A stretch of 63,675 nucleotides of DNA, filler included, from Octopus bimaculoides (lineage: Eukaryota): the NCBI RefSeq assembly GCF_001194135.2. It is 7 parts of 7 records of this genome, joined end to end, with 100 filler letters (N's around TTAATTAATTAA, not from the genome) between each part and the next. Parts side by side here need not be neighbours in the genome. Positions count along the whole stretch, not along the records: positions 30,872 to 51,136 come from NC_069003.1; 6 more parts are not named here. One strand, 5' to 3'. Of this stretch, positions 30,872 to 50,900 are shown in pieces. Under the pieces are notes generated by a model. The model had not been told where the DNA came from, ran no database searches, and saw only the letters and a list, made by a program, of their open reading frames with translations. How positions within the stretch are numbered: the stretch's first letter is position 1; each line of letters starts with the position of its first letter. The translations under genes and the position numbers were made by a program.

Positions 30872-31350
30872 AATTACCAAGCAGCTTGCAAAGGTTCCGT
30901 GATGCTATAGAAAATATCAATCTTGATCCAAGCAATTTATGGGAAGATTTCAAAACAAAAGTATTTCAGGCTGCAAGTTCTTCAGTGGAATTTAATTCGT
31001 GTAAATCCAGTGACTGGTTTTCGGACAAATCACCAGAAATTCATGATCTGTTTTAAAAAAAACAAAACTTGTGCAATACACTTCTTTCTCAGTCTTTGAA
31101 CCCCAACTCAAACGAAGCTAACAGAAAGCTGAAAGGGAAAGTGCAGACTGCTCTAAGGAAAATTAAACAAGAATGGTGGAATGATAGGGCAAAAGGGGCG
31201 CAAGATGCAGCTGATAGAAATTATGCCAAGGGTTTGTACTCTTCTGTTAAGGAGATATATGACCCGAAATCTTCTTCAATGGCTCCGGTGAGAACAGCAA
31301 ATGGACCTTTGTTTTTGACTGACACCGCTTCTATTCACCGCTTCTATTCA
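30872..31350 (+). mobile_element. RTE-clade LINE ORF2 linker fragment
   Basis: WEDFKTKVFQAA...DWF...EI..L; KVQTALRKIKQEWWNDRAKGAQDAADRNYAKGLYSSVKEIYDP...VRTANGPLFLTD. Confidence 0.8.
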
Positions 31351-33004: not shown

Positions 33005-33243
33005 TAATAATTGCTTTCAAGGCTAGCAAGCCCAGAGGAGATGGACGAGTCGATTACATCGACTCCTGTACTCAACTGGGGTCGATGTAATTGACTTGCC
33101 CCTCTCCCAGTAATCGACTTACTCCAAAAGGATGAATGGTATAGTCGACCTCGGTGAGATTTGAACTCAGAACATAAAGACGGATGAAATACTGTTAAGC
33201 ATTTTGTCTAGCGTTCTAACGATTCTGACAGTCCGTTGCCTTA
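33005..33243 (-). mobile_element. SINE family A copy
   Basis: Homologous to other copies; (AAT)n at its 5' side. Confidence 0.7.
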
Positions 33244-40694: not shown

Positions 40695-40845
40695 TAATAA
40701 TAATAATAATAATGATAATAATAATAATAATAATAATAATGATAATAATAATAATAATAATGATAATAATAATGATAATAATAATAATAATAATAATGAT
40801 AATAATGATAATAATAATAATAATAATAATGATGATGATGATGAT
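40577..40845. repeat. (AAT)n array with interspersed GAT
   Basis: Direct inspection. Confidence 0.97.
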
Positions 40846-40854
40846 TAGAAGAAG

Positions 40855-41030
40855 AATCGTTTCAAATTTCGGCACAAGGCCAGCAGTTTTAGGGATAGGT
40901 GTTACTCCATTACGTCGATCTCAGTGTTCAACTGGTCCTTATTTTAATGATCCCGAAAGAATGAAAAGCGAAGTCGACCTCGGCGGTATTTGAACTGTAA
41001 AGGCGGACGAAATGCGGCGGAACATTTTGT
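40855..41030 (-). mobile_element. SINE family A copy whose tail is the long (AAT/GAT)n array
   Basis: Homology to other copies; 3' end directly joins the array at 40577-40845. Confidence 0.7.
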
Positions 41031-43387: not shown

Positions 43388-43600
43388 AGGCGCTGAACTG
43401 GCAGAATCGTTACCGCGCCGGGAAAATGCTTAGCGGCATTTCGTCCGTCTTTATGTTCTGAGGTCGCCGAGGTTGACTTTACCTTTCGACCTTTCGTCCT
43501 TTCGGGGCGATAATATAAACACCAATCGGACACTGGGGTCGATGTAATTGGCTTTTCCCTTCCCCCGAAACTGCTGGCCTTGTTCCATAATTTGAAACCA
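43388..43600 (+). mobile_element. SINE-like repeat, family A (ggcggcgagctggcagaatcgttag...)
   Basis: Recurs at 25265-25445(+), 25830-26043(-), 33005-33243(-), 34722-34870(+), 40855-41030(-), 49820-49990(+), 51980-52070(+), 14620-14965(-); usually next to (AAT)n. Confidence 0.75.
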
Positions 43601-45800
43601 ATATTAAACGCGGGTCTCTGACCAAACTCGGTAAGTCTGTTGACGTAGACCGATGGAAGCTGTCACTTCTTCGAAATCAAACTAAAAACAACAAATACAA
43701 AAACATAACAAATATTATAACTAGACTTTTATTTTAGTCATGATGGCCGTTGAAGTGATCCCTGGCCTCGTTGACAGACACCGTAGCTATTAGTGAAACT
43801 GTGTTTGCTGAAGTGTATCAAGTCAAAGTGTTTTTGAATGCAGTCTACTTCCGTAAAGGTTAGTTCCGTGCAAGTGACTAAAATGTTTAAAATTAAAATT
43901 TAGATCCAAGACTCTGTAATCTTTGGTGAACAAAAATTGGTTTTATCTTTAAGTTCGAGTTTACGTGAGGCCGGAATAGTACCTTAGGTACCTTCAAGGA
44001 TTGTGTAGGTAAAAAGCCAATAGAATGATGGTCATTATATTATTGTTATTATTTTTTCTAATGGTTTTTGTGATTGTGTTAATCCAGATCAATCCTATTA
44101 TACCAGATCTACACTCAAAAGTGTTCAGCCATGACTATCCTGTCTGTTTTCCGGCATTTGTATCTAGAATTACATTATCATAGACGTTTATTTTTAAGTT
44201 GTAATACGAGGAAAGTTTAGCTACTGTTACTAACCGGTCAAGCACAACATGAATGCTCCCGCGTTGACTCACATTTTGTTAAAACTACTCTACATTGCGT
44301 CAATAACTGTTTCTGCTTTTCTTTTTTAAAACAGAGGTTTTCAGAGATTTTGGGGGAAATGCTGACAGTAAAACCCTTCTATTATTTCACTTCCACACAC
44401 ATCCTTAAACATGTTCTTTACTTCCTTCCATCTCTAGTCATTCCTCTCGGCCTTAATAACCAATCAACTAACACAACCGTCACACCCTAACTACCTTCTA
44501 TTTTACGTTATTCAAAAATTACCATTTGCTAAATTTGCTAAATTTGCACTTCCTTTTGCTTTCTTCTTTTTCCTTTCTTTTCTTTTCTTTCTTTCTTTTC
44601 CCCTTAGTTATTTTTCTCATTAGAACAGCTTATTTCAATATCCGATTTTGGCGGTTAATCTCCCTAAAACCACGTCTGTAATCTTCTCAATCCCCAGACA
44701 GCTACATTCGTTTATTCTCCACTGACTTTCAAACCACAACTCAACGCTGTCCGACCAATTCTTCTTGTTTCGCTCAAGCTGCGGTTAGAACCATTATTGT
44801 GATGAGAGGGAGAAAGTGTTAGGGACAAAACCTTTCGAGAAGACACATAATGATTGTTTTATACCATTCCACCTTCAAGTTAGTTCTTCGTGGAATATAA
44901 ATAAAGCCAGCAAGTGACGCTGCCTTAGATATAACAAAAGCGGAAGCGTTTCTTTCATTCGTTTTTATTTTTATATTTTTCAGCTATTGCGCGCGCGCAA
45001 CTGTCCTCTTTCTTCTTTCATGTAGCAGAATTGTGTCATAATATTGATATTCCTTGGCCCAGACTAAACAGACGACGTAAAGTAACCCAAACCTTCACCA
45101 TTGACGCCACTGTCAACGTCACTCTCGTTGTCTCTTTCATCACTCTCCTCAACAGCGACGTTGCCACCACCACCACCATCACCTTCTCCCTCTTTTTCTC
45201 TACTACTTCTCTTTACTTCTTCCCACCTGATCATAAGCATCATCGTTATCAAATAATCATAGGGACAACAATAATAATAATAACAACAACAACAATAACA
45301 ACGATGGGGGGGTGGGGGTGATAACAATGTTGATGATTTCTTTTCGTATTGTCCTCCCAAGAGGACAATATAAAAGAATTTCTTGATATCGTTTCACAAT
45401 TTATTGTGTACAGCATTTACTACATTACCTATTAACTTAATTGTCCGAATCTATGTCATTGGCCCATTTGAATTATTTCCCTTGGGTTATTTTATTTTTA
45501 TTTTATATGCGACTATGTCAAAAACATATCTATATCCAGGGTTACAAAATACTATATTCATATATTTCCAAATACTATTTTCATAGCATTGAGATAATGT
45601 TGGATGAATGAAACAGTAAAACGCTGAGAATTAGTTAAGTTTCCTTGTGTTTTGAGTTCAATTCCTGCTATAGACGACTTAATACGTTTGAATTGGATAC
45701 ATAGCCTTAACGTTCTTGAGTCCATGCCATCGATTATATCCCCGCTTGACTGCTTTCGTCTGAAATCACAATTACATTGTTTTCTTTTCTGTTCTTCTAG

Positions 45801-46069: not shown

Positions 46070-46185
46070 GTAACTTATTTGCTTACATTCATACATGCAT
46101 GCATGTTTACATAAACAGTCATACATGCGCACATACACGCATGCCCACATACATGCATGCATACATACATGCATACATACATACA

Positions 46186-46216
<31 letters not shown>

Positions 46217-46225
46217 GTACATCAT

Positions 46226-47086
46226 AGTAATTTAGACAAAATTTTCTGTAATAACCATCCATATCCAGGAATCTCATAAGCTCCTTTTTGTTTGATGGAA
46301 CTGGGAATTTCACAATAGCGACTGAAATTTCGGGCTTTACAGTTTTTTTCATAAATAGCTTTCGTTTTGTCCTGTGATTTCTTCAAATGTTCTATGGCAA
46401 CCTCAGTAGCTTTGGAAGGTCGGTTTCGAAAAGTAGACACATGGTCTAGCGAGTTCAAGTGGGATTCAGGGCTCTCAGAAGGGCTTGGCTTAATGCTAAC
46501 ATGTGGATCAGACAAAACCTTGGACCCTGCTAAATCATTTCCAATAATCAAGTCTACACCTGAAACTAGGAGAGTTTTCTTAACACCAACTTTCACCAAA
46601 CCAGACACAAAATCTGACTGCAAATCAACAAAATGAAGAGATGCACTTGAAATTCCACTAATACCTTCTAATAAAACGTCAGAGTTAGCAGACGACACGT
46701 CCGAGAAAGGAAGAATACCTTCCAACACTAGAGACTGGAGTTCGCCTGTGTCCCTCAAAATAGTGATGGGTCGTAATGTGGACTTATCACCCTTAAGTGA
46801 GATAAACCCTTTTGAAATAAAAGGCAAGTACCCCTCCTCATTGTTAATAATGTCGGAAATAGGCTGAGACTTGATATTCACAAAAGCGTGTGGAAAGGGT
46901 TGTGACTAATTTTTTTAAATCCTCAATTGCTCCACACTGGGAAATTCAATAAATTCTTCCACCTTAAATTCCATGATTAAATACTGATTTCACAAGAAGA
47001 ATTTCGAATGTTGATACAAAATTATGCAGGTAATATGTGTATTTTAGCAGTGGAAATTTTTGTATATAGCCTTTTTTTTTTTAAAC
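46226..47086 (-). mobile_element. Deleted/rearranged Gypsy (Ty3) LTR-retrotransposon internal region
   Basis: ORF 46222-46881: ILRDTGELQSL (degenerate aspartic protease DTG motif) and GVDLIIGNDLAG; then AIEHLKKSQDKTKAIYEKNCKARNF (integrase C-terminal-like); then, in another frame, AIVKFPVPSNKKELMRFLDMDGYYRKFC (RT-RNaseH connection). Confidence 0.85.
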
Positions 47087-47151
47087 TCTAGGGGTATGAT
47101 TTTCGCTTGGGGTGCGAGAGGTCCCGGGTTCGAATCCCGGACGAGCCCCCA
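47087..47151 (+). pseudogene. 5'-truncated reverse-transcribed copy of mature tRNA-Pro (nt ~11-76 including CCA); its complement is the Gypsy primer-binding site
   Basis: tctaggggtatgattttcgcttggggtgcgagaggtcccgggttcgaatcccggacgagccc+cca matches canonical eukaryotic tRNA-Pro from nt 11 onward. Lacks the 5' acceptor strand; anticodon reads GGG (47109-47111). The minus strand reads ...gtaaca-aat-TGGGGGCTCGTCCGGGATT, i.e. LTR end followed by PBS. Confidence 0.9.
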
Positions 47152-47154
47152 ATT

Positions 47155-47530
47155 TGTTACGATCAGACAAATTATAATGTAAGAAAAAGGGGGTAAACTT
47201 CTGATCGCAACAACAAAGTGTTCAAACAGGGAAGCAAATGTTCATATATGAAGATTATGTCCAGTCTCAATTGATTCAAGGTAGGTGGTGAACGGTCCGA
47301 CCCGTATGCAGCTCTGTCTCTCGTACGAGATTACCTGCCTTGCTCGTTAACAGGAAGTGAACGAGGTTACCTGTCTCGTACTATGCTAACTTCCTGTATA
47401 TATATTTGGTTACTCATACCAACGTTATTTCATTTCTGCCAAACAGTCGTTGACAAACGTTTATCTCGCCATCTTCGGAAAATATAGGGTAAGTTCTCAC
47501 CCTTCATTATCTTATAGGGAATACATAACA
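47155..47530 (-). mobile_element. 5' LTR of the Gypsy element (~376 bp)
   Basis: Inverted termini TGTTA...TAACA (TG..CA rule); 3 nt from the PBS; TATA-like run near 47397-47405. The distal end is inferred from the terminal motif only because no second LTR is visible. Confidence 0.7.
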
Positions 47531-47902
47531 CGGTGCTCTGCAACCGGTGTGCCACGGCACACTGGTGTGCTGAAGTATAACCTGAATATAATTTTTTTCG
47601 TTTTTGGATTTGGTTTGCAAGATTTTTTATGTGATTTCGTGTGTTGAAGCATATTCTGTTGTGTCTGGGGAGAGTCATTTTCTTATTGTGCCTTAAAATT
47701 TAACACACTCACCGTTAATAAAAATAAGAAATAAGTGGAAATTTTAACGGTGAATGTGTTGAATTTTAAGGCACAATAAGAAAATGACTTTCCCCAGACA
47801 CAACAGGATAATTTTTTTCCTTATAGTTTTAGTTCGGGTGTGCCGCCGAATTTTGAAAAGAATATAAGTGTACCGCAAGTGAAAAAAGGTTGCGGAGCTC
47901 TG
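47531..47902. mobile_element. hAT-like MITE abutting the Gypsy LTR
   Basis: Imperfect 15-bp TIRs (cggtgctctgcaacc / ggttgcggagctctg); long internal palindrome ~47655-47815; homologous to the 15670 element. No TSD found. Confidence 0.65.
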
Positions 47903-50900
47903 GTGTAGACACGTCTACTGNNNNNNNNNNNNNNNNNNNNNNNNNNNNNNNNNNNNNNNNNNNNNNNNNNNNNNNNNNNNNNNNNNNNNNNNNNNNNNNN
48001 NNNNNNNNNNNNNNNNNNNNNNNNNNNNNNNNNNNNNNNNNNNNNNNNNNNNNNNNNNNNNNNNNNNNNNNNNNNNNNNNNNNNNNNNNNNNNNNNNNNN
48101 NNNNNNNNNNNNNNNNNNNNNNNNNNNNNNNNNNNNNNNNNNNNNNNNNNNNNNNNNNNNNNNNNNNNNNNNNNNNNNNNNNNNNNNNNNNNNNNNNNNN
48201 NNNNNNNNNNNNNNNNNNNNNNNNNNNNNNNNNNNNNNNNNNNNNNNNNNNNNNNNNNNNNNNNNNNNNNNNNNNNNNNNNNNNNNNNNNNNNNNNNNNN
48301 NNNNNNNNNNNNNNNNNNNNNNNNNNNNNNNNNNNNNNNNNNNNNNNNNNNNNNNNNNNNNNNNNNNNNNNNNNNNNNNNNNNNNNNNNNNNNNNNNNNN
48401 NNNNNNNNNNNNNNNNNNNNNNNNNNNNNNNNNNNNNNNNNNNNNNNNNNNNNNNNNNNNNNNNNNNNNNNNNNNNNNNNNNNNNNNNNNNNNNNNNNNN
48501 NNNNNNCCCCCCCTATTTGTTTTCTTTTTGTTTCCTCGGTGAGGTAGTTCAGGGTTTTTTCCTCGATTTTAATCTTGTATACTTTTAATAGTTTTTTTTT
48601 CTTCTATGTTGCCAAACAAAAATCTCTTTTACCACCCAATGAGGATTAAACGTGAAATTAAAACTGCACACATTAAACTGAATTAGCAATAGGGAACATC
48701 ACACCAACGCATCGGTAAATCCAGTCTCCAATGACTCGCCTGTGCTAATAAGTAATAATAAATATTATTCCACATCCTAATCTACTCAATAGTTTTAATA
48801 GATAAATAGATAATTTTCTACATAAATATACTGGATGGACTCTTTGTTGACCCCCCTATCTGTTCACGTTTGAATCGATAAATATTTAAATTTCGTTTCA
48901 TTGATAGCATGTTGTCGTCGAAGAAATGGGTAACGTCCACACAGCGACTGTCTGATGTTTACATTGGTGTAAATTCACTGCAAAACTGTCAGACGTAGAT
49001 GTTGATATAATTCAATAATGAAGTGGGAATAAAAGAAAGTGGAGAAAGATATGTGTTTAAAAGGAAAGGAACAAAGGGCGAAAAGAAAATCGACGGATTA
49101 AAGAAGGAAGGGAGAGGAGGAGGAGGGAGAAAAGAGAAGAAAGATAAGACAACAAACAAAAAGTCATGTAGAATAACTTATATAAAGAAAAAAACTGGGG
49201 GAAAATGAAGAAAATAAAAGGTGTACGGTGGCGGGGCCGGAGTGGGGGGGAATGACATGAAAAATGAAGATGAAAAAGAATAATAAAAAGAAAGAAGAAT
49301 AATATTTGAAAGTACCATGAAATAGAAAGGAGAAAGAAATGGAATAAAAAAAGTCATAAAGGGAAGAAGAGTTGGGTGCAAAGTGAATAAACAGAAGCTG
49401 AGCTTCTTTACTCTACGGAAAGCATCGAGTCATGTTTGGCCGCTTTCAAAGGCAACGTTCAGCACCAAGTTAAACCGTTTTTAAGCGAAAGCAAACAGTT
49501 CAGCTCTGTGTGTGTGTGTGTGTGTGTATATAAGTGTGTGAGAGTGGCTGTGTATGTGTGTGTGCGCGTCCTTTGTTACCTTACCCCCCCCCCATCAAAT
49601 AGAGCGCATTGTAATGGAACCGTCCAGTTGTCTCGTTCTATGAACTTGTTATCAAGTTTCTGCTTTCCTTGACGGAAAGTCAAAGAACAACCATTAGTTA
49701 GATCTTTTAATTTTGTTGTGGGTTTATCTCACCCCAAGCACTTGATATGCTAAATACCTACAGCAATTATTATTCAGGCCATTTCATTTATTTTCCTCCT
49801 CCTTCACTTTTTTTTCCTCAGAATCGTTAAAGCATCGAATAAAATGTCCAGCAGTGTTTCTTCCGGTTCTTTACAGTTCAAATCCCGCTGGAATTCGGGG
49901 TCGATAAAATAAGTACCAGTTGATCACTGGGGTCGATGTAATAGACTTATCCCCTCCCCTGAACATGCTGGCCTTGTGCCAAACTTTGAAATCATTATTA
50001 TCATTATCATTATTATTGTTATTATTATCATTATTGATATTAAACTATTATATGCTACATTTATTAGTAGGAATGTCTTGAGGTATAGTCACAAGTCACC
50101 TCAAATCTCAAGAATCTTTCTTAGGATTCTTATAGAAGACAGGATTGACCTTTCCTGAAGGTCGGCAGAGCACTTCTCATTACCAATATCTGTTGCCTTT
50201 GTTTTCAACAATCACTTCAGCTCTTTAGTTAGGTCCTGAAATGTCTTAATTTGTTTCAATTTCTTTGGAATTCATTCTGTTATCATATGGTATTGTAAAG
50301 ACTGATTTTACAATCTTACAATTTTCTATAAGAAAACTAAAAAAAAAAAAAAAAAAAGAGCCTGTCTCCTATGAAGTGGAGCCTTTCTCTGATAATGTGT
50401 TTGTCTGAGAGTGAACCCATCTTGTGTGAGAATGAATCCTTCTCCCTCCCGATTGAAACATTTTTCACGACTATTCAAAAAACTAATAAAAGTGTAATAG
50501 AGCAGGTATATGAACTGTAAAAGAACGATCCAAAACAGGTGCTAGGGTGCTTCATTGGACAGGGGGTGGGGTCCAATCACAGGGAAAAACGATAGACAGT
50601 CATAAAACTTATATATTATGAAGTTATACTATGAACAATACGTGGGCCTTTTCTCACTCAGTTTGACCAAGGCTAATAAAAGGATTCTAGAATTACCAGC
50701 ACTAAACAATTGAGAGTATGTAGAGGATAGGCAAAGAGAAAACGTAAACACAGCCGAAAGGTACCGAGATCATTACAAGTGCAAGTTGGTAATTTTACTT
50801 TTACACATATTTTGTTTTAGTTTTTTGTATGTTCATTATACTCTTTACTTATTCCTTGTGACACTTTGTGCGCATTTCATTTACAAGTTTTGACACGTCC

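Follow-up and report, generated by a model that had tools for sequence, protein, structure and literature searches.

The DNA analysed here (the window) is a stretch of 63,675 nucleotides (nt), filler included, from Octopus bimaculoides (GCF_001194135.2), in which seven parts of the genome are joined end to end; positions 30,872 to 51,136, the piece of 20 kb considered below, come from NC_069003.1. The minus strand of this piece carries what appears to be the 5′ end of a deleted Ty3/gypsy-type retrotransposon with long terminal repeats (LTRs) that used tRNA-Pro as primer of minus-strand synthesis. The complementarity of its primer-binding site (PBS) to the tRNA extends over 65 nt. We consider that this segment was reverse-transcribed from the mature primer tRNA-Pro, by read-through during plus-strand strong-stop DNA synthesis, and then inserted in the genome, with a probability of about 0.8 for the nature of the element and the origin of the copy taken together. 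The features of the segment (window positions) are the following:

47155–47530, minus strand: putative 5′ LTR of 376 nt with TGTTAT...GTAACA termini and a TATA-like box at about 47404.
47152–47154, minus strand: spacer AAT, separating the LTR end (..ACA) from the PBS.
47134–47151, minus strand: canonical 18-nt PBS, the complement of tRNA-Pro nt 59–76, CCA included; its sequence is TGGGGGCTCGTCCGGGAT (47151 down to 47134).
47087–47133, minus strand: tRNA extension of 47 nt, the complement of tRNA-Pro from nt 58 down to nt 11.
47109–47111, plus strand: anticodon, nt 34–36, GGG in the tRNA sense, with nt 34 at 47109.
47070–47086, minus strand: junction composed of GTTT, A11 and GG, without tRNA similarity, either native leader or filler.

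Read along the minus strand, TTGTCTGATCGTAACA precedes the AAT spacer and TGGGGGCTCGTCCGGGAT comes next, the complete order being ...GATCGTAACA - AAT - TGGGGGCTCGTCCGGGAT - TCGAACCCGGGACCTCTCGCACCCCAAGCGAAAATCATACCCCTAGA - GTTT - A11 - GG. The PBS, located 3 nt past ..ACA, matches at 18 of 18 positions the 3′ end of metazoan tRNA-Pro with its post-transcriptional CCA. It occurs once in the window and was not found in any of 100 shuffles. The extension is gapless with the PBS and covers the T arm, the variable loop, the anticodon arm and most of the D arm, the two together (47087–47151) being complementary to tRNA-Pro nt 11–76. A search of the window with both halves of the extension gave no further occurrence. 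Similarity to the tRNA ends after nt 11, and the following 10 nt (GTTTAAAAAA) are unlike tRNA nt 10–1. A first-pass annotation of this DNA had described a complement running 47 nt beyond the usual 18, to about nt 11, and carrying a CCA and a GGG anticodon; its coordinates are correct, the complement is indeed gapless and the CCA is present.

Rfam aligned 47085–47140 (plus strand) to positions 9–63 of the tRNA model with 26.4 bits (E value of 0.0024 in a search of 501 nt), a score that falls short of the gathering score of 29 owing to the missing 5′ part (acceptor strand). ARAGORN found no tRNA gene in the native sequence and called tRNA-Pro(GGG) when the missing nt 1–10 were restored, which agrees with the anticodon noted in the first pass. 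A functional tRNA-Pro gene would have a complete cloverleaf, with its 5′ acceptor strand and A box, and no encoded CCA, whereas nt 1–10 are absent here and CCA is encoded. The absent 5′ end and the encoded CCA rule out a genuine tRNA gene, as well as the insertion of an LTR into one, and the segment is therefore not a gene.

Relative to human tRNA-Pro-AGG plus CCA, 62 of the 65 positions are identical, the mismatches being nt 27 (T), 34 (G) and 57 (G). To survey natural tRNA-Pro genes, a protein collection was searched with the antisense translation of the copy (WGLVRD[S/L]NPGPLAP[x]A...), in which W corresponds to CCA and x reports the identity of nt 34 (K, E, Q and a stop standing for T, C, G and A, respectively). 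About 175 open reading frames (ORFs) are antisense to full-length tRNA-Pro genes lacking CCA: about 121 TGG, 47 CGG, about 8 AGG and no GGG. ORF P0008 led to an unrelated contig (L032) in which ARAGORN finds a tRNA-Pro(CGG) gene. This gene consists of GGCTCGTTGG followed by the sequence of window positions 47087–47148 with C instead of G at nt 34, and then by ATATTTT, without CCA. It is identical to the copy at 61 of 62 body positions and the sole difference is nt 34; T27 and G57 are therefore natural isodecoder features and not mutations. A genuine tRNA-Pro(AGG) gene with G57 exists in L034, a contig from a marine metagenome whose first 4284 nt (L034:1-4284) hold 24 tRNA genes, this one among them, in an unusually dense eukaryote-type array of 4.3 kb.

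Only two of the ORFs recovered carry the W of an encoded CCA. The first, P0131, belongs to L033:5147-5229 (Logan SRR31406916), where an antisense copy of another isodecoder, 69 nt long and CCA-bearing, has a compensatory U50-A64 pair, G18 changed to C and a GGG anticodon. A partial duplicate of the tRNA 3′ end (AAT TGGGGGCGT AAT) stands before this copy, no LTR context is evident, and the copy may be a microhomology-primed retropseudogene. The second, P0171, corresponds to a CCA-bearing copy of tRNA-Pro(UGG), 61 nt long and diverged, present in a contig of GCA_022075345.1 (L037:2655-2715) and in a metagenome scaffold (L038); it follows CACA-TA and reaches the D loop, in a contig rich in transposable elements that has RVT_1 ORFs but no demonstrated LTR.

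Reverse transcriptases read inosine as G. Eukaryotic tRNA-Pro is among the tRNAs whose nt 34 is inosine (I34), the TAPSLIVR set (PMC11066159). The restriction of the body difference to nt 34 and the absence of GGG among about 175 genes support a primer whose A34 was converted to I34 and read as G. Provided that the segment is a retro-copy, G34 is probably the trace of inosine at A34 of a tRNA-Pro(AGG) primer. The copying of I34 as G had been proposed in the first pass together with the statement that eukaryotes essentially lack Pro(GGG), and the gene survey speaks for both; the comparison with genuine Pro genes left nt 34 as the only mismatch (61/62), although the matching gene is CGG and not AGG.

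The alternative for this part of the interpretation, and for this part only, is that G34 results from an A-to-G (or C/T-to-G) mutation after insertion or that a real tRNA-Pro(GGG) was copied. A single substitution is always possible, the host tRNA genes lie outside the genes surveyed, and the gene with the identical body, in L032, is CGG rather than AGG. Against this, 61 other body positions are unchanged, and a random change exactly at nt 34 has a likelihood of a few percent at most. The absence of GGG from the natural genes also speaks against it, as does the GGG anticodon of the second independent CCA-bearing copy, in L033. We regard a mutation or a GGG gene as a rather improbable source of G34.

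Arrangements similar to the one of the window were found at other LTR-like ends. Metagenome contigs were scanned with a pattern composed of CCA and the tRNA-Pro complement through A58 to nt 46, in which T was fixed opposite A58, so that copies with a misincorporation there would escape. Five contigs were identified, two of which (L004 and L006) are one locus (100% identical over 2086 nt), giving four independent loci (L003, L005, L004/L006 and L007). The tRNA segment is the only sequence that they have in common with one another and with the window. Each of them has a CA end, a spacer of 2–3 nt and a CCA-bearing tRNA-Pro complement of 35–39 nt without mismatch. The LTR-like ends and spacers are GTTACA-TCT in L003, GGTCA-TT in L005, ATACA-TAA in L004/L006 and ATAACA-AT in L007, and an AATAAA is positioned 80–90 nt upstream of the LTR-like end in L003 and L007. 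In 24 retroviral records that share this 18-nt PBS, taken as baseline, CA is followed by a 2-nt spacer and complementarity continues only 0–5 nt beyond the PBS. Scans for the read-through pattern gave 0 matches in viral_contigs and, with any base permitted at nt 57 and 58, 0 matches in genome_contigs. No description of natural LTR-retrotransposon copies with a long primer-tRNA extension was found in the literature searched.

The four copies end at tRNA nt 38, 39, 42 and 42. G37 of tRNA-Pro carries 1-methylguanosine (m1G). The end points at nt 38–42 lie just 3′ of G37 and equally fit run-off on a 3′ tRNA half, either relation being suggestive only, with four loci and a pattern that required nt 46. 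The extension of L007 (L007:2704-2830) runs directly into a 5′-truncated reverse transcriptase (..GPLLAIL..HSYADDTQLY) of a long interspersed nuclear element (LINE). The tRNA copy and the LINE sequence share 8 nt, GGACCTCT, and the junction possibly originated by microhomology-mediated joining of strong-stop DNA with LINE sequence. A separate observation concerns L005, in which a perfect 19-nt inverted repeat (L005:1690-1708 / 1824-1842) surrounds the PBS and its extension and recalls the U5-leader stem around the PBS of retroviral RNAs.

The element in which the tRNA copy of the window is embedded is a heavily deleted, truncated one. Its PBS is found within the expected 0–5 nt past the 5′ LTR, while gag and pol are represented by remnants only. 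Downstream of the junction the following features were annotated:

46975–47069, minus strand: putative untranslated leader of about 95 nt, between the junction and the gag-like ATG.
46915–46974, minus strand: gag-like start MEFKVEEFIEFPSVEQLRI, with ATG at 46974 and 19 codons followed by a stop, the rest of gag being missing; identified by eye.
46480–46842, minus strand: aspartic protease remnant (ILRDTGE, LIIGNDL), 48% identical to P0001, itself a Pfam RVP match.
46324–46458, minus strand: integrase C-terminal remnant, 42% identity to the L001 integrase (pairwise E value 1e-8).
46236–46340, minus strand: reverse transcriptase thumb/connection motif VKPEISVAIVKFPVPSNKKELMRFLDMDGYYRKFC, in a different frame; identified by eye.
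46100–46235, no strand assigned: (TACA)n microsatellite, at which recognisable element sequence stops.

The integrase tail is in frame with the protease, the zinc finger and the catalytic core being deleted, and a deletion breakpoint is located at about 46330. A frame of 219 codons (46222–46881, minus strand) stays open across the internal deletion that joins the protease to the integrase C-terminal tail, which suggests that the deletion arose while a non-autonomous lineage was replicating and not through slow decay. Pfam gave no match for the window ORFs, the reverse transcriptase motif included. The protease ORF of the window is itself absent from the protein collection searched, where it has only three distant matches (46–50% identity). 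No alignable relative of the leader (46975–47069) was found, and the loci of the distant relatives, L001 and L002, lack a Pro PBS as well as any LTR or leader that could be aligned. These relatives encode a SCAN/CCHC gag and RVP, followed directly by Integrase_H2C2 and rve. The Gypsy domain order (protease, reverse transcriptase, RNase H, integrase) was not found; the order in the window is protease, integrase tail, reverse transcriptase motif. Since integrase comes right after protease in L001 and L002, the label “Gypsy” of the first-pass annotation is best understood as Ty3/gypsy-like with an unusual domain order in which integrase precedes reverse transcriptase. We take this order to resemble that of Gmr1-like gypsy elements, a tentative assignment.

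A polypurine run, AAGAAAAAGGGGG, at 47190–47203 (plus strand) inside the putative U5 was considered as the polypurine tract (PPT) of a plus-strand element; it was rejected, every coding remnant being on the minus strand, and is judged coincidental. Positions 47652–47810, immediately upstream of the putative LTR, form a self-complementary region of about 160 nt (an 84% palindrome), which may be a foldback element or be related to miniature inverted-repeat transposable elements. The piece also has dispersed short repeats (33124–33167 / 40953–40996; 43504–43606 / 49898–50000; 40809–40957 versus 49894–50042), one of which has a B-box-like AGTTCAAATC in reverse complement, suggesting copies of a tRNA-derived short interspersed nuclear element (SINE). 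The window is rich in (TACA)n, (AAT)n and (TA)n microsatellites, which together with these repeats are reminiscent of cephalopod genomes.

No replicative step other than plus-strand strong-stop synthesis converts primer tRNA into DNA. In the origin that we favor, this synthesis would have copied the primer tRNA while it was still joined to the minus strand and would not have halted after 18 nt at A58. It would have proceeded through the T, anticodon and D arms to end after nt 11, beside G10 and G9. The primer would have been the mature CCA-bearing AGG isoacceptor, with A34 deaminated to inosine and copied as G. The over-long strong-stop DNA would then have been completed and inserted in the germline, by priming at a downstream site or by repair of its unpaired tail. 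In the first case the tail would anneal to a microhomology farther downstream, leader sequence being lost; in the second, ligation would be followed by repair of the looped heteroduplex. The outcome would be the succession of LTR, 3-nt spacer, PBS and 47 extra tRNA nt. These events could belong to the last replication cycle of this copy or have occurred earlier in its lineage.

The organization of the locus is the one expected from read-through: the complement is contiguous with the PBS, starts from the CCA, has the orientation of a PBS and ends inside the tRNA. The CCA and a G34 that is the only difference from a natural tRNA body point to a mature RNA as template. Position, orientation, CCA and recurrence thus uphold the core of the first-pass annotation, namely that a copy of the mature primer tRNA-Pro was joined to the PBS of the element and fixed in the genome. 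An end at nt 11 is what a block at N2-methylguanosine 10 (m2G10), or at m1G9 with one base lost, could produce. The first pass had likewise placed the stop next to G9/G10, for which the end point is a fit and not a proof. Strong-stop synthesis normally halts at 1-methyladenosine 58 (m1A58), and when this stop is lacking the plus strand is known to run on into the tRNA (PMC11251516; PMC8599865).

Several points weigh against this origin. According to the literature, the product of read-through can neither finish plus-strand transfer nor integrate (PMC11251516; PMC8599865), and the read-through products of HIV-1 are described as dead ends (PMC8599865). The primer copy of Ty1 and Ty3 is reported not to be inherited, while retroviruses pass a tRNA-derived PBS copy on (PMC7472051). 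A58 and G37 were copied as correct bases, which would be unusual if they carried 1-methyladenosine (m1A) and m1G, and a hypomodified primer may be needed. From these correct bases, a primer without m1A58 and m1G37 is at least as likely as their faithful bypass. The first pass had proposed a read-through of both marks; the copy extends past both positions, but absence of the marks fits at least as well as bypass. The LTR, also claimed there, is plausible from its TGTTAT...GTAACA termini and TATA-like box, but ungapped and sensitive gapped searches of the 20-kb piece did not find a second LTR copy. It is inferred from termini and context, as the piece has no 3′ LTR, PPT or target-site duplication. 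The collections searched yielded no further copy of the family, hence there is no family consensus for the leader. The surveyed tRNA-Pro genes include none of the host's own. Finally, an N gap (47921–48506) begins 390 nt upstream of the LTR and the junction is known from the assembly alone.

The 65-nt complementarity could also be an inherited and possibly selected trait of the family, a native near-full-length PBS that ultimately derives from an ancestral read-through. An element that looks non-autonomous and has kept a 219-codon protease/integrase-tail frame open suggests a lineage that replicated after its deletions. The extensions of the four other loci are perfectly intact, and an extension present in the RNA genome would be recopied harmlessly in each cycle. 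However, no second family member carrying the extension was found. The four other loci are unrelated to each other and have different end points, which resembles repeated accidents and not a conserved design, and a duplex of 65 nt would need full unfolding of the tRNA. A family trait is on this evidence unlikely.

Much less probable is a tRNA-Pro retro-copy of independent origin, a LINE-type tailless retropseudogene or a fragment of a tRNA-derived SINE that became the neighbor of an LTR end by chance. CCA-bearing 5′-truncated retro-copies of tRNAs do exist, and the 69-nt GGG copy of L033, which has no clear LTR end and whose partial 3′-end duplication suggests microhomology priming, could be one of them. 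The segment of the window, in contrast, starts exactly at the place of a PBS, 3 nt past ..ACA, in the orientation of a PBS and with element genes downstream. It has no visible flanking target-site duplication, the element would otherwise be without PBS, and the CA-spacer-CCA arrangement recurs in four unrelated loci. A chimera of assembly or sequencing at the LTR/tRNA or tRNA/leader junction, to which the nearby N gap and the repeat-rich region lend some ground, is highly improbable as well, for both junctions lie within continuous sequence, PBS and extension form one unbroken tRNA complement, and the same architecture is present in independent assemblies from other samples.

The prevailing view is that the m1A58 stop is necessary for plus-strand transfer and that read-through products do not integrate. 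If the read-through origin proposed here is correct, a chromosomal copy with 47 extra nt and four shorter cases would show that such products are occasionally fixed, read-through strong-stop DNA being able to complete germline integration. A Metaviridae-like element would then be able to inherit primer-copied sequence, as retroviruses do and unlike what is reported for Ty1 and Ty3. The copy would identify the primer as an inosine-bearing Pro isoacceptor, provided that the I34 reading is true, and hints at a primer without both Watson-Crick-face methylations or at their bypass by reverse transcriptase. A more tentative proposal, which we hold to be doubtful at present, is that over-long primer-tRNA copies at LTR ends are a recurrent and readable record in animal genomes. 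The positions at which they end (nt 38–42 at the four loci and nt 11 in the window) and the bases that they carry (G34, correct A58 and G37) would tell how the primer tRNAs were modified or cleaved and, if so, could point to primers bearing I34 and poor in m1A58/m1G37, or to 3′ tRNA halves. Surveying such copies systematically could be an inexpensive way to learn, from sequence alone, which primers are chosen and how tRNAs are modified in non-model animals. The mechanism is already known from retrovirus experiments, the element is not of a new kind and the effect is small in scale. The added value is modest and consists in a germline non-retroviral case, a readable trace of inosine and the recurrence of such copies.

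The closest known system is retroviral primer read-through, as seen in circles of murine leukemia virus (MLV) and in HIV-1 when the m1A58 stop is lost. According to the account given in PMC12220202, circular MLV DNA has a nearly full-length reverse-transcribed tRNA between its LTRs (Colicelli and Goff 1986). There, as in the window, the attached tRNA is copied far past 18 nt, the CCA is kept, a few 5′ nt are missing and the copy is directly beside the LTR end. The retroviral cases were, however, obtained in the laboratory, in unintegrated circles or mutant cells, and are usually dead ends, whereas the present copy is chromosomal, belongs to a Ty3/gypsy-type element and also records the anticodon. 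Near-full-length, CCA-bearing and 5′-truncated tRNA copies are known as well from HIV-1 DNA. The same account mentions tRNA inserts of 63–65 nt (HITME, from tRNA-Asp or tRNA-Glu; Konstantinova 2006), and a reverse-transcribed tRNA-Gly adjoins an HIV-1 provirus (Gurgo and Franchini 2025, PMC12220202). Those insertions derive from non-primer tRNAs and lie in nef or outside the 3′ LTR, while the tRNA copied here is the cognate primer and is contiguous with the PBS.

Tailless tRNA retropseudogenes, which are LINE-mediated (PMC5322556), are likewise reverse-transcribed from a mature CCA-bearing tRNA and truncated on the 5′ side. The present copy differs from them by having neither target-site duplication nor LINE tail and by abutting an LTR at PBS distance. 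It shares its plus-strand order (tRNA, CCA, complement of U5) with the origin that Ohshima and Okada reportedly proposed for tRNA-derived SINEs, from strong-stop DNA and its primer tRNA. Unlike a SINE, it lies inside an LTR element that has a whole LTR and coding remnants and does not seem to be dispersed as a short element. Several elements have primer contacts beyond the 3′ 18 nt of the tRNA, such as the bipartite PBS of Ty1 and Ty3, the internal tRNA-iMet fragment used by copia and the A-rich loop of HIV-1. These share with the window a complementarity to the tRNA beyond its 3′ end, but their contacts are short, separate and selected boxes, whereas the one unbroken complement of 65 nt found here is best explained as a copy.

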